The notes below the pieces were generated by a model that was not told where the DNA came from, did no database searches, and was given only the letters and a program-made list of their open reading frames with translations. Below, piece by piece: positions 3,015-47,372 of a stretch of DNA of 64,000 nucleotides. Made by a program: the position numbers and the translations under genes. The DNA lies in assembly GCA_047495785.1 (NCBI GenBank), contig JBLDXI010000015.1, positions 806,001 through 870,000 of the forward strand, written 5' to 3'. The DNA is from Lepidodermella squamata. Its lineage: Eukaryota > Animalia > Gastrotricha. How positions within the stretch are numbered: position 1 is the first letter of the stretch; every line of letters begins with the position of its first letter.

Positions 3015-4446
3015 GTTCCGTTATTATATTAATTTGTATATTTTACCTAATAAATGAGCGGAAATTCCATCAGATCAAACTAAACGCGATATACATTTAA
3101 AACAAATCGCAGTCGCAGAAAATGATTAATAAAATCAGCTGAAAAATGCAAACAATTTCTGAAAAACTTTCTAAAAAATGAGGAGGAAACCGGTTAAAAA
3201 AATGAGGAAAATTTCAAAATAATGGATAATTCAAAATTAAATACTTTTAATATTTTCATACTTTAAAAACTAAACGATTCATAGCATGACACAACAATTT
3301 TAAATTCCCGCTCGCTGAAAATGAGGTGAAATGTCCATAAATAGGATAGAAAATATAGAAGTGACCTGAAAATTCGGCATTTTATGTCTAATTTCAAGTA
3401 TCAGTCGGAAATAAATTGAGAAAATATAAAAAACTTGAATAATAATTGTCCAAAACTAGGTGTTTCCCAATTTTCGTACTTCGGTTGATTTGTAGCAATA
3501 GTGTTGTTAAGTTAGACGAAATTGTTCTAAAATTATGGCTCTATCTTTGACCTTCATAACAATATAATGCGCTGATATTTTCTCAAGAATTTAAGCAAAC
3601 AATGAGCTTGCAATTGAGACGCGTGGTGGGCCATCGCAATGCCTTCTGGTTCGCCTGTGCACATGAAGAAGTGTTTTTAGGTCAACGCAATGACGCATGT
3701 CAGTTACAGCGCCGCGCGGCGTAATACACGACTCATCTGCGTATCACCACATTATTTCACGTGTTGGCAGGTGATAAAGATTAAATGATGGCTGCATGAA
3801 AGCAATCATGGCTAATGCGAGAAGAAAGGACAGACTTGAAGACTTTTTAACAATTCGAATTGCCAAATTTTTCAATTTCAATCTGACTAGAATAAAATTC
3901 TAGCAAAAAATCATTGGAAATTACACCTCAATATTGTATTTTCATATAAATTTTTAGCTCGTGAACCTATTTTTTTATTTTTGTTTGTCGAATTATCTCA
4001 AATTAAGAATTTGCATTGTGACAAATTTTTTATACCCAATTTCCAGTGATCCTTAATATCTCCTAATGAACACACTTATTGCTATTGCCTTTGAGCGTAT
4101 TTTCGATTTTTTTTGAAGCGGTGTCAATCCATAAATTAAGAAAAAATGAAAGTGAATCGAATTGAAATGTTTGAAATATTGCTTTCCTGTATAAACATGC
4201 GCCGCAATACCGTATTCGGAAATCGAACCAGAAATAGGGATGTGGCATTTTTCTGAGCTTTTAGTCTTTTATGACTTTCTTGGAACTTTCTCCGCGCCAT
4301 TCTACTTGAGATTTTTTCAATTTTTTGAAGTCAAGGCAAAGGATTCCTAATTAGCTCTTCACTTTATTGTCATTAAACTAAAATTAGTCGATCACAAGTG
4401 TTTTGAGAAGTCATTGAGGAAATGTTTCTTTCATAGAGTTCTTGAT

Positions 4447-5727
4447 TTAGATGTCCTTCTTCTCGGTCTTGACCGGGGCAGAGAAGGCCGGCAGGCAGCG
4501 GTGGCTCTTGTTCAGGGTGATCATCTGCTCCGGGGTGAGGCGGGGCAGGGCAGCTTCGACGCAGAGAACGCCCTCAGGGGTGAAGTACGACTTCAGCTCG
4601 AGCTTGGCAATATCGGCAGCAGCCAGGCCGAGTTCGGTCGGGAAGAAGTACTTGCGCTCGTAGGTGCGCTTGACGGCGTGCTCCTTGGGCGACTCCTTGA
4701 CGTCATGGCTAGCCAGGACTTCGATGTAAGCCGGGTTGGCCTTCGAGTAGAGGCTGTAAAATAAAATTAAGAATTCAAATCAAAACCTCAAAAAGGTTCC
4801 TGGAGCTTTGGAAACAATGATTGCAGCGGAAAAAGCTGATTAAAGGTTCCAAAAAGGTCCAGAGAGCTTGGAAAATGGTTCAAGCGAACTTACGTAACAG
4901 TGACCTCCTCGGGCTTGAAGCTGGGCAGATCGAAGCACAAGTACAGGCTGCGGTTGCCCTGGGCGTCGAAGCGGATCGGGTTCTGGAAGGTGAAGTATTC
5001 GATCGACGAGGTCGGGCGGCTGGGCAGCTGCGACATGGTCGAGGTGAACGACTTGCCGGTGCCAGTCTTGTTCGACTCGTACTTGTTGGCGAGCTCGAAC
5101 ATCTTGCCAACGGTGTACAGGTCACGCTCGACTTCCTTGTCGAACAGCTTCTCGAGCTTGGCGAGCTCGCTGAACAGACCAGTCGGGGTGTTGAAGCTGG
5201 TCAGGCCACCTAAATAATCAGAGATCAACCAACTGAAGTTTTATCAACCAGGCACTTACCGAAGCCGGTCCAGGGCTTGGCATCGAATCCACCTGAAAAT
5301 ATAAAGCTTGAAAAAGGTTCCATACTAGCTTTTGCCTGATCTTACCGAAGGTGGTCGGGTAGCCGTAGGTCGAGGGGAATCCACCGAAGGTGGTCGGGAA
5401 ACCACCGAAGGTCGACGGAACAGCACCGAAGGTCGACGGGACACCACCGAAGGTCGACGGAACACCACCGAAGGTCGACGGAACACCGGACCAGGTTCCG
5501 AAGTTGCCGCCGAAGGTCGAGGGAAGAGCGTTGTAGCCGGCGAAGTTGGTCGGGAATCCACCGAAGTTGGCCGGGTAGCTGGTCGAGGTCGACGGGAAGC
5601 CACCGAAGGTCGAGGGGAAACCGCCGAAAGCGGCAACCTCAGCTGGGTTGAAAGAAGAGCCGAACTTCTCGAAACCAGTGAAGGTCGAGGCCGGGGCGTA
5701 GGCTGGCTTGAAAGAGCAGGACGACAT
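4447..5727 (-). CDS. Small heat-shock protein (alpha-crystallin domain) with N-terminal PSTFGG repeats, 4 exons
   Basis: Exons 5727-5346, 5292-5260, 5209-4894, 4753-4447. The spliced C-terminus 'FDLPSFKPEEVTVTL...IEVLASH...KRTYERKYFFP...LKSYFTPEGVLCVEAALP' matches the alpha-crystallin domain. Strong C/G third-position codon bias. Confidence 0.85.
5346..5630 (-). repeat. Coding 21-bp tandem repeat (PSTFGGV/F heptapeptide)
   Basis: Repeated ccgaaggtcgacggaacacca-like units on the + strand; about ten P[ST]TFGG-like units. Confidence 0.9.
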
Positions 5728-33765: not shown

Positions 33766-36700
33766 TCACACTCTCGACGCAACCGAAGTATCGAGCAGCA
33801 ACAACGCACTGGCATTTTTCACGGCCGCAGCACTCTGCGCCGATTGCTCAACATTTCGCCTCGCAAAACACGAAAATTTCGACCTCAAATCGTATTTTTC
33901 GTAAATAAACGACAACAACGGAATCGATAAACAAGAAATTGAAACAACCAAAATTCGATGTGGGAAATTGTCAGGGTACGGCAGTAATTTCGGCAGATTA
34001 ACGCCCGGCTCGCCGGCGGAGAATCGTGCGAAAACCGCGAAAATAAACGTCGCAATTGAGCCGAAAAAATTCGCATATTTCGAAAATAACGCAACAGTCA
34101 ATTGGGGTAAAACTAGGCAAAACACTAAATCAGCAGCTAGGGCGAACATTGCGTAGACCGATGACGTTAGCACGGCGAGTAACGTCGCTAAAAATCCGAT
34201 AACAACAACAGAAATTCGCTGAACCCACAACAGCTCGCTTTCACTGGATTGCGGCCGGAATAGCGGTTTATAAATGTTGAAAGTAAACATGGAACTAGAG
34301 CCTAAAATCGCAGAATCCATCGATGAAAACACGCCGGCGGCTATTGCGGCCAGCCCGGCCACCGCTGCCCAGTTTGAATTTGTTAAATACCGGAATGAAA
34401 ACGGCAAAATGAGGCTAGAGTCATGAATTGGGTCTAAATTTCGGCCTAACTCTGTCGCGTTAAAATTGGCGTTTTTCGCCGCTAGGCCGACAATAGCTGG
34501 CGGGATGGCGACTATTAGCGCGGAAATTCCGCCGAAAAATGACAGTAATTGAGCGTGAAGTGGGGTTTTAGCGGATAAAACTCGTTGGAAATACGCCTGC
34601 CACGGGATTGAGCCTAACGACATAGCTACGGCTAAGTCAAGCCATGATAACCAATTTTGTGAATTTAAATCACCCATCCAGTTGATTTCCGTCGAGTTGC
34701 TCTGCGTGAATAGCGGCACGGCCGGGTCGGTGATCATCAGGCCGAATCCGAGCCATAGTCCGACGAGGATAGTGAACATTTGAAGGACGTCCGTGTACGC
34801 GACGGCTAGCATTTGTCCGAAAAATGTGTAGATCACAGTTAGCAGGGCGGAGCATGGAATGGCGATTTCGCGAGATACGTCCAGTAACACTTCCAGAGTC
34901 GTTCCTAAAATAAAATATAGAAAAATTGAATTTAGACGAAAATGCACAATTACATAAGTAGATTGAATTCTAGCACTTGAATGCTTCTCTATATATGCCT
35001 TAAAAAATTGAATTTTCCTCATAGTGTTTTTCAATTCTTTCATTAAATTATTTTTTACTTTCATAAGATATAAATCACAATTCTCGGAATCTATTGGAGA
35101 TTTTTCCAACTTTTGCTTTCAGTTTCTTATGGCCTCCCCGGCTCCTCTAAATTCCGAGACAAGGAATACGTCCAATAACGCGTCATCGAACCCTACGGCT
35201 GCCAACCGGAAAGGCTCGAATCCCGGAAGACCGAATAAGTCTTCCCGCGCCCGTGCCCCCAAACCAACATGGGGAGATCGAGTCGAAGCCTCTGATATTA
35301 ACAGTAGCAAGACCTGCAGCATATTCACCCGCGGACCCGGATTATCGGAGGTGTCAAAAACCTTCGTCCCCGGAGCCTATCCTGAGCTAACAAAGCTTGG
35401 CTTAGGTGAGCCTCTCATTGAAGAGTGGTTCTGTCCAGACATCATGACTCAGGTGAACACCTCGCTGCTGTGCATCACCCGGTCCTCGTCGTGGAATAAT
35501 GCTGTTTACTATAGTGAGCAGATACACGGCCAAGGTCAAGGTGAGTTCGTAGTACGAATCAATGCTATGATAGCATTGGCTCTTGCACAGCGCATCTCGC
35601 TATTCAGTTTCTCTATTCTTCCACATTCTCAAACATTACGTCACCACTTTTTAGGCGGTAATACGTTGGTTCGCTGATTGGTTCATTCGAATGCGACGCG
35701 GGCGATTCAAACGGGCGATTTTTCTGAGATTGTCAACGCTTTTACTCCATTTTGTGCTATTTTTCACCCAATCCCGCGCGACCTTGCCAGAAAAACTAGA
35801 TTTTCATGAAAAAAAAATGCTCGTTTGAATTGAACGCGCCGCACTCGAATGAACATTTTCAACAATCTCGCATTTGAGCCATCTTCAAGTGATTAAGCGA
35901 TTCGCCCGCAATCCTGAGCTTGTACTCTATAGACTCCCCTAATATTTTTTTCTCCCTGATAAATTATGCTGCCTTCGAATTTTGGGACATGCTCTGAGAT
36001 GACAAAGCTCAATTGAATAAATAACCGATTTATCACTTCGTTATTCTATAAAATTCTCCAAGTAAGAGTCACGAATTTGTCTCTACACGTTCATCTTTTT
36101 GCTTAAAATAATATTTTGTTAGGCCAAAATCGGACCTGGCGGAAATTATCGGGACAGTGGCGAAAATCCACGAGCGCTGAATTCTCAGGCCTCTTTTGGG
36201 TCTCTTCCTAGTCTACTACATTCTGCCCGCCTTGGCCTTCAGCGTTCAGAAGACGAACTGGACGGTGAGTTTTCGTTATTAGTCCCGAAGGTCAAATCAT
36301 CGAGCTAACAACGCTCGTCAAGGCCGTCCCGGAATCAAGTTCCCATACCTTTTTCTGTTCTTCATCTCGCACGTTATCTCTTCTCATTATTCAATTCACC
36401 GTAAATACCGAATTAAACACAAGACTTGCTTAAACCAACTGGGAACGTGCCAAAGGACACTTTGTTCATTGTATGAACAATAAAAAACGGCGCTTCCATC
36501 AACGTTGGCTAAAAAGACCTTGTGCGACTTCGAGGACTTCCGAAGAGAGGCCTCCGAGTTTGATCGGAAGACCCTGAACCAGGTTTTCTATCAGGCTAAA
36601 CAGGAAAAGGGTGCTGCTCAGTGGCCCTCACCGGGATCAGGTTCGCGGCGGACTCCTGGCCGACCTGCGCCATGCCGTGGGCCGAGGCTGACTTTTAATG

Positions 36701-39700: not shown

Positions 39701-42700
39701 GGCCCGAAAGTCACATTGCCGAAGTAGTAGAACAAGGTGATAGCGTTGCTGTTAAGGTTCAACAAATTCTAGTTCCTTGGGCAAGATTTTAGAGTGAAAC
39801 TTTATATCTCTCCCCGCTTCAAAACTGTATTGAATCGTGCCTACAGCCTGGTTGTAATTTTTGCTATTTTCTTCTAATAAACGTTATTAAAATTGTGATA
39901 CTCGCTACCAGGGTGAGAGGTAAACACGATTAATAACCGATTTGACACTTGGAGTTCCAAGGGTTTCTCTAGCCACCCTCAAACCACCCCCAAATTTCGA
40001 GGTTTTGGCTATTTTGAGCTTTTGAGGTCTTTTTTACCTCATTTCGCGACTAGCCATCCCAAATTTCAAAAGGCCAGATAAATCCTTACTCGGATCTGCT
40101 TATGGCCCGATGATTAAAATAATGGATTTCCACTAATACGACTTGGTTAAACATCAGTACGATCCAAGGATCAAAGAACCGTTTTAATTAATGCTATTGG
40201 CAGCCATAGAATTCGATGAAGAACCGGTGACAAATCAAGAATGCCGGTGTGCTTAAACAGAGGATTTTCGGTAATTGACGTTCTTCAAATCAGGTATTCA
40301 GACTTTGCTGGGCGTTAATTCCTGAAATTATGTATTACACCATTTTGGCTATAAGCTTTATTCACGATAGTAAACTGTTAATAATTTCATGAATTTGTCA
40401 TATTTTGTAGCTCCTCGCGAGAAGACCGCTGGCGCTGGGAAATTATACCAACTAAATGCGTCCTTATGGCGCCGTTTATTTTGGGCTAGCCCCTTATCAG
40501 CAAAATAATAATATCTCTCCTTTGAGCATTTTTGCTCAATTGCACAACTTGTGCTCAAAATGCTCAATTTGTGCTCAAAGAGTGCTCAATATCTGCACAA
40601 CTTGTGCTCAATGGCTGTCGGAACCTATCACGAGTGCTTATTTTGTGCCCAATTTGTGCTTAACAGCCCTAAGGCTCCCATTGAGCACTCCAAAGATGAC
40701 AAAAATGCGGCAAGAAAAAAATCAGAATGTGAATAAAACTTTTCAAAAGCAATGAATAAAGTTTGAAAAAATATTGTCAGTCATTTAGTTTTTTCACATT
40801 TTCCTTCTCCGCGCGGAGTGTTTTTTTCGAAAAGCGCAATCCGAGTCTCACGCTGCACTTGTCTTAGATTGCTGATGTATTGTAATATTTGTCGATAGGC
40901 AATGGGCGATTCAATTGTGTGCAAATTCATTGCATTCGAAGCCTGCCACTATGCTAAGATCGGGAAAACCTCCGATCTTGCCGACGTCAAATCATTAGTT
41001 CGTGATCTAGCGGGCCTCAGGGGCGAATTCGCTCTCTTTTGGACGGATGGCGATAGACCAGTGCATATCAAAGAGCAGTCATGCCTTCAAGTAGCCATCG
41101 AGATGTGTAAAACGCCGCCGTTAGTCATGGCAGCGGGTAAAGTTCCCGCCAAGGTGCTCAGTACCGAACACCTCCAGCCGTTGGATTATATGCTTAATCA
41201 GGTTCCTACTGACTCTGTTGATTACGAGGAAGAAGCGGAACCCAGAACTGTGGTAACCAAAGCCAGAAAACCTGCTGTTGCTATCACTCCTGCTGAAAAC
41301 AATACGAAAAAGCGAAAAGCGGAATTGGATTCATCGCTAGATAGTCTGGACTCCCCGCCAGAGCCGCCGCGGAAAAAAAGCGCAGCGAAAATGCTCACGT
41401 CGACTTCATCTCGCCCCGCGAATCCTTCTAGGTTGGCATTCGATACAACGAGCTTGTCAAGCTTATCGTTGGCATCCTGTACAAGTTCGAAGCCGGGCTC
41501 CAAGTGGACTAAGACCGAGGAGAGTGTCGCGATCGAAATAGCGAATTTCTTGAAGACCAACAAGGCCAAGGCAAGCGACTCCAATGTGAGGATCGCTCTC
41601 GTTAAACTTGGCCGCGTATTCGAAGATGAATTCGGCAGTAGGTCCGAATCAGCTGTTACCACGAAAGTTCTTGGCTTCATGTAAACAGTTCTTGCAATTG
41701 ATGGATTCAGCGGAGCAGTAAAGGCGTGGATGATAACTTGATATTTTTTATCGTTTAGGAAATTTATCTAAATCATGGACAAAATCAACTATGCGAATGA
41801 TGAATCGAAAAGAAGTATGGCCTTCTGTTGTATTCGAAAGCGCTTTCAACTCTTGTTCTGTGGCGACAGTTGTTTGAAAAATTGCCTCTCATCGAACAAT
41901 GCCAATTAGAAATCTGAAGTTCTCCAATATGTAATATGAATGAACCCTTAAGAAATCTATTTTTTCCATTTAGTGCTTTTAAATGGCCTCATTCGACCAC
42001 ATCGTCGACTTGCCGGAAGATTTGAAAGTTTCCGCTGAAGATGCTGAGTTTTTTCGTCGAACCCATCAACTAACGAAAGCAAGCGTTGTCAACGGTCGGC
42101 TTTACTACTCTGGTACGGAGATCGCTGTTAGGGACGCAACAAAATTGCTACCGGTTTTTCTCAGGTCGATGAAAAACCGAATGACCAGAACCAAGGTTGA
42201 AGTTGTTGACTATCCGAGACACTTGGTGAAAGTGATCCATTCAAGCGAAATCACCATTCATCTGAGCGACCTACAGGTTGGAACAAATTTCCTGAATCGG
42301 CGGGTCGAAATTTCAGGAGCCTATCACGAAGTCGAAGACGCTGTAAAAATCGTGAAACACTATTTCGCCAATTCGGAGAATGACTATGGCATCGATTCAG
42401 AAAGTACCGACAACGTCAAGGAGAAGAAACGAAAACCTGCCGCACTAAGAGAGAAGAAGTTGGTGAATCGCTCGAAATATGACTGCCCCTACTGCGACCG
42501 GAAATCTATTTCGTCGTCGTCCTTTTTACCTCATGTAACAGAGCACTGCACCACTGGAAAGCTTACCGAGCCTTCACCCACGAAACGTAAATTGGCCGGT
42601 AAATTGGCTCAGAGGAATCAAAAGCTTGCGCAATCGAAATCAAGTTCATCAGCCGAGGCGCCCATCACAATCAGTGACGATGATACTGATACTGATACTG

Positions 42701-45700
42701 ATACTGTTTTATTTTGCAATTTGTCTTTCGACATTTAGCAATTAGGAATTAACAAAACGTTAAGTTATGGCGCCTCACCACAGAAATTGTGAATTTTTCC
42801 AAGTCAGTGCATTTAAGATATTTCAAGAATGAAGAATACGAATTATTAACGACGGAAGATGGTAGCCGGTTCCAAGCTGGACGCACTCGCCTCACAAATG
42901 AAAACTGAGAGCTGGCATGACTGTAGCTTTCCATCGTAACAGAATGATGCGGTAAGCGCGGATTAGTGGAAATATTAAAGAAGTCAGAGAAATTTAAGTC
43001 CACAGCACGCCGGTACATTTTATGACATAACGCAAGATCGTGTTGGTAGCGTCTTAATTCGAGTGAACACAACCCAAGCTTTTTTAGTCGTTCTTCATAG
43101 GAGGAGCCTTCGATCGATGAGTAGTAGGTACTACGATATAGCAAACGTTTTGTGAAGCGGATTTGAATCGATTCGACCTTTTCAATATCTGTTATTAGGT
43201 AAGGCGAGTAAACAGACGGGCAAAAGTCAAGACGAGATAAAGTATACGTTTTATAGGCTTTGAGACGTAAGGATTTAGAGGCGAACGATTTACAAATAAC
43301 ACCGTTAATTCTGTGGCATTTAGTTGCCAATGCGTTACAGTGCTCAGAGAAGGTGAGATTTTTATCAATAATTATTCCGAGGTCTTTCACTGTGTCCACA
43401 ACATCAAGCTCGACATCTTTAATTTTGAATTTGAACATAAATTTGTTTTGCCCGAGTATAAGCACGACGCATTTTTTCGAATTCACAGACAGGCCGTTAG
43501 CGTCAAACCAGTTTATGATTTCATCCAAGTCTTTCTGCAGTTCGATGCAATCGCTTAAAGAACGGATCGCCCGGTATAGCTTCGTATCGTCGGCGAAGAA
43601 TTTCGCAATCGATCTCTCTACCAATACATTTACTTCTGTCGTGAAAATCAAGAACAGCAGCGGCCCTAGAACAGAGCCCTGAGGTACTCCAGAAGTGACC
43701 GCCGACCATGATGACACACTGTTATTCACTGCTACCCTGAAAAATCGGTCACTCAAGAAAGCCTTTATCCAGGCGTGCAGGTTTCCACAAATATTGATAT
43801 CTGAGAGCTTGGATAGTAACAAAGAGATCGGCACAACATCGAAGGCTTTTGACAGGTCCAGGTATATAACAATTATATCAATGAGTTGATCTAATAGTTT
43901 CAGCCAATCAGTAATACATGACAACAACTGCGTCTCACAATTTCTTCGAGATAGAAACCCAAATTGATTTTCAGAGATCAGGTTATTTCTATATAGGTAC
44001 AGTAGCACATGATTCTTCACAATGGTTTCTTGGATTTTGCAAATTATGCATGTGAGACTCACAGGCCGATAATTGCCAACATTGGAGGCATCACCGTTAC
44101 GTTTGAAGATAGGTGCGACATTTGCATATTTCCACACAACAGGAATCTCACCTTGCGCAAAAGAAATGTTGAAAATCATTGCTAGCGGTGTACACAGTGA
44201 GCGGGAGAGCTTTTTAATGAGCACAGCTGGAATGTTGTCTGCTCCTCCAATAGGCTTTTCCTTGATGATGCTGGACAATCAACTAAGTTGCTGCCTGATG
44301 GGGTAACAATGTCAGTGGCAGCTGACGCTTCAGCTTCGTTCGAAGGGTCTCAAGCAACTGTTGAGTTAATTACTGCGATATCACCCGCTATTTCGACTCC
44401 GACGTATTCGACGGAAACTGGAACTAATGTGGATCAGCCGGTCGTATCGCCGATTCGTGATTCGATCGATCGCTTTGAGTCTTTTCTCAATAAGCGGTGT
44501 AGCGGTAAAAGCGGTCTTAGAACGAAAACTAAACAAGCTAAGGTCGTCAATCTACTGAAGGTCGTTAGTCTTTGCGGCTTATCTTCAGTGTCGGAGTTAA
44601 TAGACGCCAAGTCTATCGACTTCGTCGACGAGAAAATCGGCAATCTCCCTATATTGGACTCCACTAAATACTATTACGTCCTACCGATCATCGAGTACTT
44701 GGAGTACTGTGAAATAGAAGAGCGATCCATGAGTTTGAATCAAGCCGACCAGGCCATTGCGATCAAGAAGTGGAAAAACGTGAAGAGTGCGATGACCAAA
44801 GGTATGCTCCTCGAGAGAGCTTCGAAAATCAAGTCGGAGATCGATGCCCTCTCGAGGGGGGAATTGATAACCCTTCGGGACTGCTTCAAGGTCGTTTCAA
44901 ATCTTCGTAAGCAAATAAAGTCTAAAATCAACTTCAACAAAGAGCCGACTGAAGATAGTATCTGCTTCCTCTTCGCATACATTAGCCTGTCTCTTTGCCT
45001 TAAAAGTATTATTCGCCCTTCGGCATTTTGCCGAATGACCAAGGCTGAGCTCGACGGCGCTATGCAAGGCAAGAACTCATCAAATGAGACGGTATACGTG
45101 GTTCGCGTATTAAGTGAGTCAGTGCGCAATTTAAACATTGAACTAATGATATTTTTTAGATTGCAAAGCAAAGCTGAGCAACAGCGGATTTGTTGTTTTC
45201 TCTGAAGAAGCCTTTAAATTAGCCGATGATTACGAGGCTCATTGGAGGCCTTCGACGGCGAAAAAAGAGCTATTCCTAACATTACGAGGTGAGTCGTTGG
45301 AAACGTCCGATCTCGACAAGATGACAAGCAAGATTTGGCCGAAGTCTGAGAAAAAATTCGGCTATACTGTGCTTCGAAAAACAGCGCATTCGATGTACGA
45401 GTCAATGCTTATGCACGTCGCAGCCCTGTTCTGTTCCGGTGCACAACATACGTAATTATTATTGATTAATTAGTGATTAACTGAAGTCGCTCCAATCTTT
45501 CAGGAAGGAAACCGCAAAAAGGCATTACATCTTGGCCTCTCCTGAAACTGCAGTCGTTTTTAGCGAGTGCTTGGAGAAAATTTTGACCGATAGCTTATCA
45601 TCATCTGATTCCGATAGTGTTACTGCCGATTCAAGCTTTGTTACTGCAGCCTCGGCTATCTCAGACTCAGCGGATGCGATCTCGATAGCCTCAACGGATG

Positions 45701-46748
45701 GTCAGTCTGATGCAAGCTCTGCCTCATCATCTGCCTCGAAACGCAAAGTTTCATATCACTTCTCCGCCGCTGAGAATGCAGAAGTAAAGCGTTTTATTGA
45801 TTTCGCGGCTAAGAAAAAAAAGGAAGTCGACGAGCCAGGTCTAATTGAATCTTTTCTTTCGAAGCAAATTAAGAATTACCTAGTCGCCAATTTCCCCGGC
45901 CGTGACGAAAAAGCTATCGTTCGGCGTGCTAAATACATTTTGAAAAACTAATGATTGAATGATTAATATATTCCCTGTGAGCGATGGTGATAAGTTTGAA
46001 GATTTGATTTTTGAAGAATAAAATTTGATGTCGGGTTTTTCGTTTGTTGTTAAGGCAGCGTTTGAGTATTCGCAGATTTCAAGTTCCAATCATTAAAAAC
46101 GGACTCTCAGAATACCTAGTTAGAAAATGACATTTCTGCAAAGAATGCGCAATCGAGTCTCGAAAAATGCTCAACAACTGCCTAATTTGGTGCTCAAATT
46201 ACGCTTGACTACTGCTTAACGATGCACAAGGAGCTCAACGAAGTCGCAAAATCTGTGCTTAATGTGCTCAACGTTGCTCAACGTTGTGCTCAACAGTGCT
46301 CAACGGAATGCTCAAAGATGCTTAACGAAATTGAGCACAAGGCCAGAGTGGTGCACAACGAATGCTCAAAGGAGAGATAATAAATCGAAAGGTCTAATTA
46401 CAACTCTACACATTTTCAATTTTTCGAAATTTTACAAAATTAAAGCATTTTAAAAATTAAAAATCGTTAATTCTTACCGAAAGAGAGGCCAATAGCGATT
46501 CCAGGTGGCGCCAAGGTCCAAATGAGGCCGTCACGGTAGACTGATTCCGCGGTTCCGTTGATGAAACCGCCGCAAACCGACGTCGCAGCCATCGAAGTTG
46601 CGGCGACGAAAAGCGATAGATTTCGCCCGGCCAAGACATAGGATTCGGGGCTTTGGTTCGAAATTAAACGGCCAGCAGCGATGCCGACGATGAAAATGAC
46701 AATGAATAACACGGCGACTAGGATTATGGCGAAAATGTTCAGATCCAT
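33766..46748 (-). CDS. Sodium:solute symporter, SLC5A7 (high-affinity choline transporter)-like, 3 exons, ~521 aa
   Basis: Exons 46748-46478, 38942-38787 and 34904-33766 total 1566 nt in frame. Motifs 'YVLAGR', 'GGFINGTAE', 'YLTMMDPLAERYG', 'AVAYTDVLQ', 'LGSIPWQAYFQRVLS' and 'SSMDSAILGSSSMF'. Confidence 0.9.
35681..35854. mobile_element. MITE with ~36-bp imperfect TIRs
   Basis: gttcattcgaatgcgacgcgggcgattcaaacg matches the reverse complement of cgtttgaattgaacgcgccgcactcgaatgaac with a few mismatches. Confidence 0.6.
38265..38515 (+). mobile_element. Degenerate CR1/L2-type LINE fragment (C-terminus of the RT ORF)
   Basis: 'AYCVYVRLLLEYCTTVRSP...DLIEKVQANFTRR...NYLQRLNILNIKSLEERR' parallels the end of the LINE ORF at 42749-44263. 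Confidence 0.75.
39958..40088. mobile_element. Short MITE (same family as 25787-25920)
   Basis: Ends caagggtttctctagcc...ggccagataaatcctt are inverted; the internal sequence resembles the 25787 copy. Confidence 0.55.
40531..40690 (+). repeat. Left subterminal TGCTCAA array
   Basis: About six perfect TGCTCAA copies (40533, 40552, 40561, 40572, 40583, 40605) plus variants TGCACAA, TGCTTAA and TGCCCAA. Confidence 0.9.
40902..41684 (+). CDS. Element ORF1, 260 aa: PB1-like N-terminus, S/K-rich linker, Myb/SANT-like C-terminus
   Basis: Intact ATG-initiated ORF. 'EFALFWTDGDRPVHIKEQSCLQVA' resembles a PB1 motif. 'KWTKTEESVAI...FGSRSESAVTTK' resembles a Myb-like helix-turn-helix. Domain calls are by eye. 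Confidence 0.6.
   Translation: MGDSIVCKFIAFEACHYAKIGKTSDLADVKSLVRDLAGLRGEFALFWTDGDRPVHIKEQSCLQVAIEMCKTPPLVMAAGKVPAKVLSTEHLQPLDYMLNQVPTDSVDYEEEAEPRTVVTKARKPAVAITPAENNTKKRKAELDSSLDSLDSPPEPPRKKSAAKMLTSTSSRPANPSRLAFDTTSLSSLSLASCTSSKPGSKWTKTEESVAIEIANFLKTNKAKASDSNVRIALVKLGRVFEDEFGSRSESAVTTKVLGFM
41983..45951 (+). pseudogene. Tyrosine recombinase gene of the element (~761 aa reconstructed), disrupted by LINE insertion
   Basis: Segments 41983-42684, 44270-45113, 45160-45451 and 45504-45951 total 2286 nt in one open frame. Motifs: IIRPSAFCRMT (R 45014), VRVLNCK (K 45165), YTVLRK (R 45375), QHTKETAKRHY (H 45447, Y 45526). C2H2 finger YDCPYC...HVTEH upstream; Myb-like C-terminus. Confidence 0.85.
42685..44263 (-). 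mobile_element. 5'-truncated CR1/L2-type non-LTR retrotransposon nested in the recombinase gene
   Basis: Uninterrupted RT frame ending at 42749 with NYRPVSL, QFGF, YLDLSKAFD, SGVPQGSVLGPLLF and FADD. The 3' end has AATAAA followed by a (CAGTAT)n tail. TSD GATGAT at 42679-42684 and 44264-44269. Confidence 0.92.
46165..46360 (+). repeat. Right subterminal TGCTCAA array
   Basis: Perfect TGCTCAA at 46168, 46191, 46265, 46275, 46287, 46297 and 46309, plus variants; same orientation as the left array. Confidence 0.9.
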
Positions 46749-47372
46749 TCTTCCAGCATTCAGCAAATAGGAATCAGCAGATTATTGATCACATTAAAAT
46801 CCTAAAAATAAAAATAATGTAGAAATTTGCGAAAGAAATGAAAGTTTTCGAGGTTACTTTAGAAGAGAGGTAATTCCTAAAATAATCAAAATTACACTAA
46901 AAAATCCCAGCTTTTTCGCAGTAAAAATTGAAATTTGCAAATAATCATCGAAATTTCATAATGTTTCAAAATTAATTCCAGGGAATCGGAAATTCATAAA
47001 AAATGGGAAAATTGCAAATAAATTAATAACTTGAACCAGAAAAAATAGCAAACAATAAACCTCTATTTTTTATTCCTTCAACTTCAACAATTACAGGTAG
47101 GTCTCCTCAAGCTAGCGAAAAAATAGCATAAAACCCCGAATAAAGCGCCTCAAATTTTTCCATTTTTCTCTCACATACCGGTCTATTATTGGTTCGCAAT
47201 TCAAAACAAGGACATAATATTGAAATACACATACTATACATATATTTTTATAAAATAATAATCTGGCACGCGGGCAGTTGATTCTCATCACCAATGCAGC
47301 CGTCGAACAAAAAAATTCGACAGCGAAAAATATGTTTTTTATTAAGGAGGTTATTTTAGATTTTATTCGTTC

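Follow-up and report, generated by a model that had tools for sequence, protein, structure and literature searches.

A probable DNA transposon with perfect inverted ends and its own intron-containing tyrosine recombinase in the gastrotrich Lepidodermella squamata

We followed up an earlier note on a 64,000-nt stretch of the Lepidodermella squamata genome (contig JBLDXI010000015.1, positions 806,001 to 870,000), in which an element flanked by short repeats occupies positions 40509-46382; "the window" below means this whole stretch, and coordinates given without a contig label refer to it. The element is best read as a DNA transposon that is moved by its own tyrosine recombinase, and we put the probability of this reading, with the proposed action of the enzyme on the ends included, at roughly two in three. 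The element has precise inverted ends with repeat arrays inside them and a recombinase gene interrupted by introns; the catalytic residues are conserved in the family, a relative of the enzyme has the tyrosine recombinase fold, other copies exist, and the architecture of the ends is conserved in a distant relative. From these features we infer that the recombinase acts on the ends, that a circular intermediate is formed and that the arrays take part in the reaction. The window copy is no longer able to move by itself, since its recombinase exon is disrupted by a long interspersed nuclear element (LINE), and an intact relative would have to provide the enzyme for it to move.

The terminal inverted repeats (TIRs) are 17 bp long and perfect: TCTCTCCTTTGAGCATT at 40514-40530 on the plus strand is exactly complementary to 46361-46377. 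Immediately outside them the pentamer TAATA is found on both sides, at 40509-40513 and 46378-46382, and these two identical pentamers may be a direct repeat derived from a crossover region or a target-site duplication. With up to three mismatches allowed, no third match to the TIR was present in the 64-kb window. In a shuffle control, a perfect 17-mer inverted pair was obtained in 8 out of 300 shuffles of the 8-kb region (~3%); the TIR pair alone is therefore modest evidence and its weight comes from the context. Two other ways of drawing the ends were rejected: a TIR of 18 or 19 bp with a shorter duplication gives no matching direct repeat, and the flanks do not fit a 3-bp duplication of the PIF/Harbinger type. 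The window contains 25 copies of the heptamer TGCTCAA where 13 are expected, and 17 of the 25 lie within ~220 bp of the two ends of the element. The looser motif GCTYAA has 7 plus-strand copies at the left end and 12 at the right end, mostly spaced by 9-12 or 19-24 bp, that is about one or two helical turns, and one further copy of this motif makes up the inner half of either TIR. The left subterminal GCTYAA/TGCTCAA array (40533-40664, plus strand) has a core spacing of 9-22 bp and an outlying last copy at 40658 that follows after 52 bp, while the right array (46168-46337) is nearly all on the plus strand, with copies 9-12 bp apart at 46257-46320.

The recombinase gene is on the plus strand. 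When the LINE and two introns are removed, 41983-42688, 44274-45113, 45160-45451 and 45504-45951 join into 2286 nt that encode 761 aa with zero internal stops, and the motifs IIRPSAFCRMT, VLNCK, YTVLRK and QHTKETAKRHY are all found in this frame; the last two junction motifs are complete only once GT..AG introns are removed. The earlier note had described the perfect TIRs with their TAATA flanks and had pieced together a frame of ~761 aa with these four motifs, and on both points its description held. The first part of exon 1 (41983-42678) encodes two KH-like domains, a CCHC zinc finger and a linker, and its start and domains match those of relatives P0002, P0010 and P0014. The second part (44264-45113) continues the linker, after which come a core-binding (SAM-like) domain and the beginning of the catalytic domain, where Arg I (IIRPS) is located. 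Exon 2 (45160-45451) carries the hairpin Lys (NCKAK), Arg II (TVLRK) and His II (GAQHT), and exon 3 (45504-45951) the nucleophile Tyr (KETAKRHY). The catalytic Tyr is followed by ~140 residues (45505-45948) made up of a Ser/Asp-rich stretch and a basic C-terminal region of ~60 aa, which has no Pfam match and resembles, by eye only, the C-terminal part of the accessory open reading frame (ORF) described below. Joining the recombinase ORF across the LINE is confirmed, because several relatives encode the same N-terminal domains contiguously with the recombinase region and a second copy of the element is free of the LINE.

The two introns that had been predicted, intron 1 at 45114-45159 (GTGAGT..TTTTAG, phase 1) and intron 2 at 45452-45503 (GTAATT..TTTCAG, phase 2), coincide with the sites at which gene models of relatives stop or read through, and the relatives thus confirm both intron sites. 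Many of these models end at the intron 1 site, right after VRV, and others at the intron 2 site, after GAQHT, GIGHK, GIGHQ or VMAHT; relative P0001 reads VRVMEVKAKLNNTGF unbroken across the intron 1 site. In L001, the contig of the best relative, intron 2 has a counterpart identical in position and phase, followed by VETANRHYKL where the window has KETAKRHYIL. Among the database relatives P0001-P0047, those that were read are truncated at, or run in frame through, one of the two conserved intron sites, and the tyrosine exon is absent from every one of them.

The recombinase assignment in the earlier note was made from four short motifs, and it passed an independent fold test on a relative. The AlphaFold2 model was built for residues 105-455 of P0001 with the family alignment and not for the window protein, to which P0001 is 32% identical over 516 aa; it has a predicted local distance difference test score (pLDDT) of 87.2 and a predicted template modelling score of 0.79. 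In a VIA-align run against 48,161 PDB representatives, the model matched XerH (Z 13.4, 273 residues aligned), IntI (12.4), XerA (12.3), Tn1549 integrase (11.7), Cre (11.3) and lambda Int (11.1); the top 12 matches are all tyrosine recombinases and span the core-binding and catalytic domains. With Foldseek the top 39 matches are all tyrosine recombinases, as are nearly all of the top 50. A shape search of the ESM Atlas with the same model returned bacterial integrases and unnamed eukaryotic clusters. Its top row is a chordate cluster labelled 'SET domain-containing protein' (613 aa, 197 members; 279 residues aligned, template modelling score 0.65), and on this structural match the cluster may represent a host protein with a recombinase-derived domain.

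The catalytic set of the window protein reads IIRPS (Arg I), NCKAK (Lys), TVLRK (Arg II), GAQHT (His II) and KRHY (Tyr). On the P0001 model, Arg I (IRPS) is placed just before a helix, Lys in the turn of a beta-hairpin and Arg II (LRK) at the start of a helix, and these positions agree with those in known tyrosine recombinases. R and P are at least 90% conserved in family alignment A1, and the H-x8-Y spacing is conserved in the window and six divergent relatives. Tyr and the helix after it are kept in four further independent lineages: L003, L005 (with the same-locus contigs L002/L004), L006 and L007. The family thus has, of the features by which tyrosine recombinases are recognized, the two-domain fold as modelled and Arg I, Lys, Arg II, His/Trp II and Tyr, and it lacks the His of HxxR. 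Recombination by the enzyme would proceed through a covalent 3'-phosphotyrosine intermediate.

The 761-aa protein is laid out as two KH-like domains, a CCHC zinc finger, a Cre/Xer-type core-binding domain and the catalytic domain. Its N-terminal 235 residues were modelled with a pLDDT of 86.6 and form two KH-like domains. Residues 1-69 match the KH0 domain of FMRP (Z 11.0, root-mean-square deviation 1.6), and residues 70-140 match KH domains of MEX-3C, Nova and vigilin at Z 7.5-8.5, which is borderline on the scale of the tool. The finger that follows, C-x2-C-x12-H-x4-C, is invariant. Pfam recognized no recombinase family in the separate exon pieces or in ten full-length relatives: no match to PF12012 (DUF3504; at E 0.1), Phage_integrase or DUF3435 (PF11917) was found in ten family proteins. 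A profile of alignment A1 had no match among PDB sequences, and Pfam detected no other catalytic domain in any ORF of the element or its relatives.

A phmmer search with the exon-1 piece gave 30 matches among 1.84 billion representative proteins, the best with 37% identity over exon 1b. Ten clusters out of these 30 matches were examined; all are unnamed and come solely from ENA metagenome assemblies. The contigs of the relatives come from three ENA assemblies, ERZ27332993, ERZ27333047 and ERZ23486787. Two scans of metagenome contigs found no relative, and megablast against phages gave no match. The recombinase of relative L005 is 28% identical to that of the window, and it is the only obvious gene that the two elements have in common. 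The L005 contig begins at TCTACATCCAGCATT, and the complement of TCTCCCTCCAGCATT at 4590-4604 provides the matching inverted end; the outer TCTC and the inner AGCATT of these ends are the same as in the window TIR. L005 also carries 14 TGCTGGA/TCCAGCA motifs, all within 8-95 and 4380-4598; a spacing of exactly 20 bp is seen for four of them. Arrays of other motifs are found in further relatives: L003 has a right-hand TGCTTGA array, L008 begins within a TGTGCYNA array, and L001 has AGCT-type motifs at both ends. Because L005 shares only the recombinase with the window element and has homologous ends and the same array layout, the ends appear to co-evolve with the recombinase. No DDE-type domain was detected by Pfam in any ORF of the window element, L001, L003 or L005. 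That the ends travel with the recombinase and that no DDE-type domain is present are the main reason to think that the recombinase, rather than an unlinked transposase, acts on the ends. Compared with L005, L002 has a 4.37-kb insertion just upstream of the recombinase gene (L002:285-4657; likewise in L004), bounded by a 26-nt inverted repeat that begins TACAGGGGGGGCCAG; this is a second, unrelated transposon nested in the element of the relative.

Other copies of the element are present in public data. In run X1 a 4066-nt contig covers 40539-42678 and resumes directly at 44264-46166, the LINE being absent; six letters are shared at the LINE-free joint, as a target duplication predicts. Since this contig joins 42678 straight to 44264, the element without the LINE measures 5864 - 1585 = 4279 bp, which bears out the sizes given in the earlier note (5864 bp, or ~4.28 kb without the LINE). 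The X1 copy differs from the window by ~19 substitutions and a few indels (~0.5% diverged), and a 9-bp insertion in its exon 2 keeps the frame. X1 contigs enter different flanks left of 40503-40505, and other X1 contigs have an AATAATA-type left flank in common. Summed contig depth in X1, which is a rough guide only, was 1288 and 858 in the end bins and 84 in the body, so that the ends are 10-15x deeper. This suggests that ends far outnumber bodies, as non-autonomous derivatives would produce. A second public run, with another organism label, contains parts of both genes at low depth, including intron 2, and no spliced joint, so that it looks like DNA.

We propose the following mechanism. Recombinase subunits would bind both 17-bp inverted ends, and the phased GCTYAA repeats would serve as accessory sites that recruit further protein, perhaps via the N-terminal domains, so that a synaptic complex is assembled. 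The element would then leave as a circle once strands are exchanged within the flanking pentamer. The circle junction would read AATGCTCAAAGGAGAGA-TAATA-TCTCTCCTTTGAGCATT, in which a 5-bp spacer separates two 17-bp arms and only the central base departs from a palindrome. Recombination of the circle with an AT-rich target would leave TAATA on both sides of the inserted element. In the window copy, the LINE fragment landed in the recombinase exon at a later time.

Several observations weigh against this reading. The first concerns the enzyme: the His of HxxR, part of the R-H-R-Y tetrad, is replaced by Thr or Asn across the family, the position being occupied in variants such as TVLR, NYLR, TKLR, TRVR, TAFR, NDLR and TDLR. 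Type IB topoisomerases and telomere resolvases also lack a His at this position and are active nonetheless, and we therefore take the missing His as a difference and not as a sign of inactivity. The second concerns the site of exchange. Well-studied tyrosine recombinases typically have crossover regions of 6-8 bp, longer than the 5 bp here, and one 175-nt X1 contig stops exactly at the last base of the right TIR (46377). Flanks that differ from the first base, as this contig suggests, are explained no worse by a variable target duplication than by a crossover sequence that is fixed, and the pentamer is compatible with both. Third, the orientation of the arrays is not conserved: both window arrays are co-oriented and the L005 arrays are partly mirrored, and co-orientation was accordingly rejected as a family-wide trait. 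Fourth, no intact copy has come to light. Two changes break frames in the X1 copy, an insertion of 1 bp in exon 1 and a deletion of 8 bp in the accessory ORF, so it is not intact either, and no intact master copy was seen in the X1 contigs. The earlier note had asked for other copies and for empty sites; the first part was answered by the LINE-free copy and its different flanks in X1, but the contigs of the public runs contain neither an empty site nor a circle junction. Finally, no spliced joint was found in the public runs. The sole possible RNA run covers intron 2 at a depth of 2-6, and because the intron is covered and no spliced joint is seen, this run looks like low-coverage DNA.

The earlier note had called the element Crypton-like and had suggested that it may define an undescribed group. 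Like Cryptons (Goodwin, 2003; Kojima and Jurka, 2011, PMC3212892), it has a tyrosine recombinase as its only enzyme and lacks a reverse transcriptase of its own. Further shared features are a recombinase gene split by introns, a short direct repeat (4-6 bp in Cryptons) at either end, an optional second gene and a proposed circular intermediate. The sole reverse transcriptase within its borders belongs to the nested antisense LINE and is absent in the other copy, and no DDE transposase is encoded. Unlike Cryptons, it has 17-bp TIRs and phased subterminal arrays in addition to the 5-bp TAATA repeat, and its protein has KH-like and CCHC N-terminal domains, no DUF3504 signal and Thr or Asn in place of the HxxR His. 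Published Cryptons are described as being without TIRs, and in the animal groups CryptonA and CryptonI terminal repeats of any kind are absent (Kojima and Jurka, 2011, PMC3212892); the absence of TIRs from Cryptons is still stated in papers of 2025 and 2026. The resemblance therefore extends to the mechanism class (a recombinase, no reverse transcriptase, a short direct repeat) and not to sequence, since neither PF12012 nor the published motifs affiliate the family with CryptonA, CryptonI or DUF3504. Our best reading, from motif comparison with the published alignments, is an element that is Crypton-like in mechanism class and lies outside CryptonA and CryptonI. The same comparison and the missing DUF3504 match in Pfam agree with the suggestion of an undescribed group, and the element probably represents a rare, undescribed lineage that Pfam does not recognize. 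Literature searches found no description of such an element.

Could the family already be deposited in Repbase or Dfam as a Crypton family? The biology would then be the same and the novelty gone. Cryptons have been recorded from several insects, including mosquitoes, which makes such an entry conceivable, yet we regard it as unlikely. The motifs of the published alignments (GACRREEL, YTGHSFRR and HGGW-KSSTVAEG-Y in CryptonI, YTNHSLR and SGH in CryptonA) are unlike those of this family and all keep the HxxR His (PMC3212892). The listed insect Crypton families measure 1.5-2.0 kb and have no terminal repeats (Kojima and Jurka, 2011, PMC3212892). The Pfam negatives in the ten family proteins, the unnamed, metagenome-derived state of the ten checked clusters and the recent statements that Cryptons lack TIRs all point the same way.

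Slightly less likely still is a cut-and-paste TIR transposon that makes 5-bp target duplications by means of an unlinked DDE-type transposase and carries the tyrosine recombinase as cargo or as a resolvase, as in the ciliate Tec elements. TIRs, a 5-bp direct repeat and subterminal repeats together are classic DDE transposon anatomy, and the X1 contig that ends exactly at the TIR suggests flanks that vary from the first base. However, the ORFs of the window element, L001, L003 and L005 hold no DDE-like domain or RNase-H-fold transposase by which a member of a DDE superfamily such as Transib would be recognized, and L005, with only the recombinase in common, has homologous ends and the same array layout. 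The ends are also unlike the Transib end consensus, CACNNTG. Tec1 and Tec2 of Euplotes differ in that they also encode a DDE transposase, which is thought to transpose them; this element has no such gene. That the element is not mobile, its inverted repeat a product of chance and its ORFs a host gene nested in an intron, is very improbable and already contradicted: perfect 17-mer inverted pairs do arise in ~3% of shuffles of the AT-rich 8-kb region, but a LINE-free second copy has different flanks, depth is far higher at the ends than in the body, the motif arrays occur at the ends only, and a distant relative from other samples (L005) has the same architecture.

The reading as a recombinase-moved transposon can also be set against better-known recombination systems. 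With Cre/loxP, Flp/FRT, Xer and integron integrases the family shares the two-domain fold (Z 11-13) and the catalytic R, K, R, H/W and Y; it differs from them in its extra N-terminal domains and accessory-site arrays, and the sequence identity is only 9-14%. The circle junction, as proposed, would resemble lox and FRT, and also the recombination sites of the Crypton literature, in having two inverted arms around a short asymmetric spacer, with arms of 17 bp and a spacer of 5 bp here versus 13 and 8. Lambda Int and the Tn916/Tn1549-type integrases likewise use repeated accessory sites inside each end and an extra N-terminal DNA-binding module, an analogy that suggests an intasome-like assembly able to tell left from right. 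Unlike in those systems, the accessory motif and the TIR's inner half are the same here, the additional domains comprise KH-like domains and a zinc finger, and the host is an animal. Starships of fungi, with their DUF3435 captain, are tyrosine-recombinase-mobilized eukaryotic DNA elements too, with short direct repeats and in some cases TIRs; in contrast to this 4.3-kb element without DUF3435 (PF11917), they are tens to hundreds of kb long, carry cargo and are restricted to Pezizomycotina. DIRS, Ngaro, VIPER and PAT elements have features that are absent here, namely their own reverse transcriptase and long terminal or split repeats.

The nested LINE is a 5'-truncated fragment on the minus strand (42679-44263) with a reverse transcriptase match (RVT_1, E 4e-30) and a (GATACT)n-type tail, and it is flanked by a GATGAT(A/G)CTG duplication in identical codon phase on both sides. 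Its tail and flanking duplication are seen at 42679-42745 and 44264-44273: on its own strand the LINE ends in a short (AGTATC)n tail, which on the plus strand reads as an extended Asp-Thr repeat in the interrupted ORF, followed by a stop. The host gene encodes a sodium:solute symporter, and the element is antisense within one of its introns. Symporter exons on the minus strand at 46467-46766 and 33766-35109, the larger with an SSF match at E 1e-21, flank the element and agree with the transporter intron named in the earlier note. The second gene that the note had claimed exists as an open 260-aa ORF upstream of the recombinase (40902-41684, plus strand); its role stays that of a candidate. It has no Pfam family, and its N-terminal part is PB1-like by eye only. 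BLASTP among the accessory ORFs of the window, L001 (2939-3697) and L005 showed no significant similarity, and a feature search of the ESM Atlas with the accessory ORF returned nothing. A weak PB1 match in the L001 accessory ORF (Pfam, E 0.015) and the resemblance by eye hint at a PB1-like accessory gene common to the family.

Reviews and classification schemes treat eukaryotic tyrosine-recombinase DNA transposons as elements without TIRs that are hard to delimit. The substrate is exactly defined in a lineage such as this one, with its sharp inverted ends, short flanking repeat and phased internal sites, and the circle-and-recombine mechanism is therefore directly testable. We suggest, tentatively, that animal tyrosine-recombinase DNA transposons include a separate superfamily of which this element is the first member to be described, with a KH-KH-CCHC N-terminus, a lox-like 17-5-17 excision site and phased arm-type repeats that would build an intasome. 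The lineage is probably under-counted in animal genomes, because gene callers truncate its genes at the conserved introns and Pfam is blind to it. Given the KH-like domains at the N-terminus, one may ask whether single-stranded DNA or RNA is involved. If active, such an element would amount to a site-specific recombination system that is native to eukaryotes, is self-contained and has a defined substrate, and an active member, if any exists, would be a candidate for a new recombinase tool with its own recognition site.

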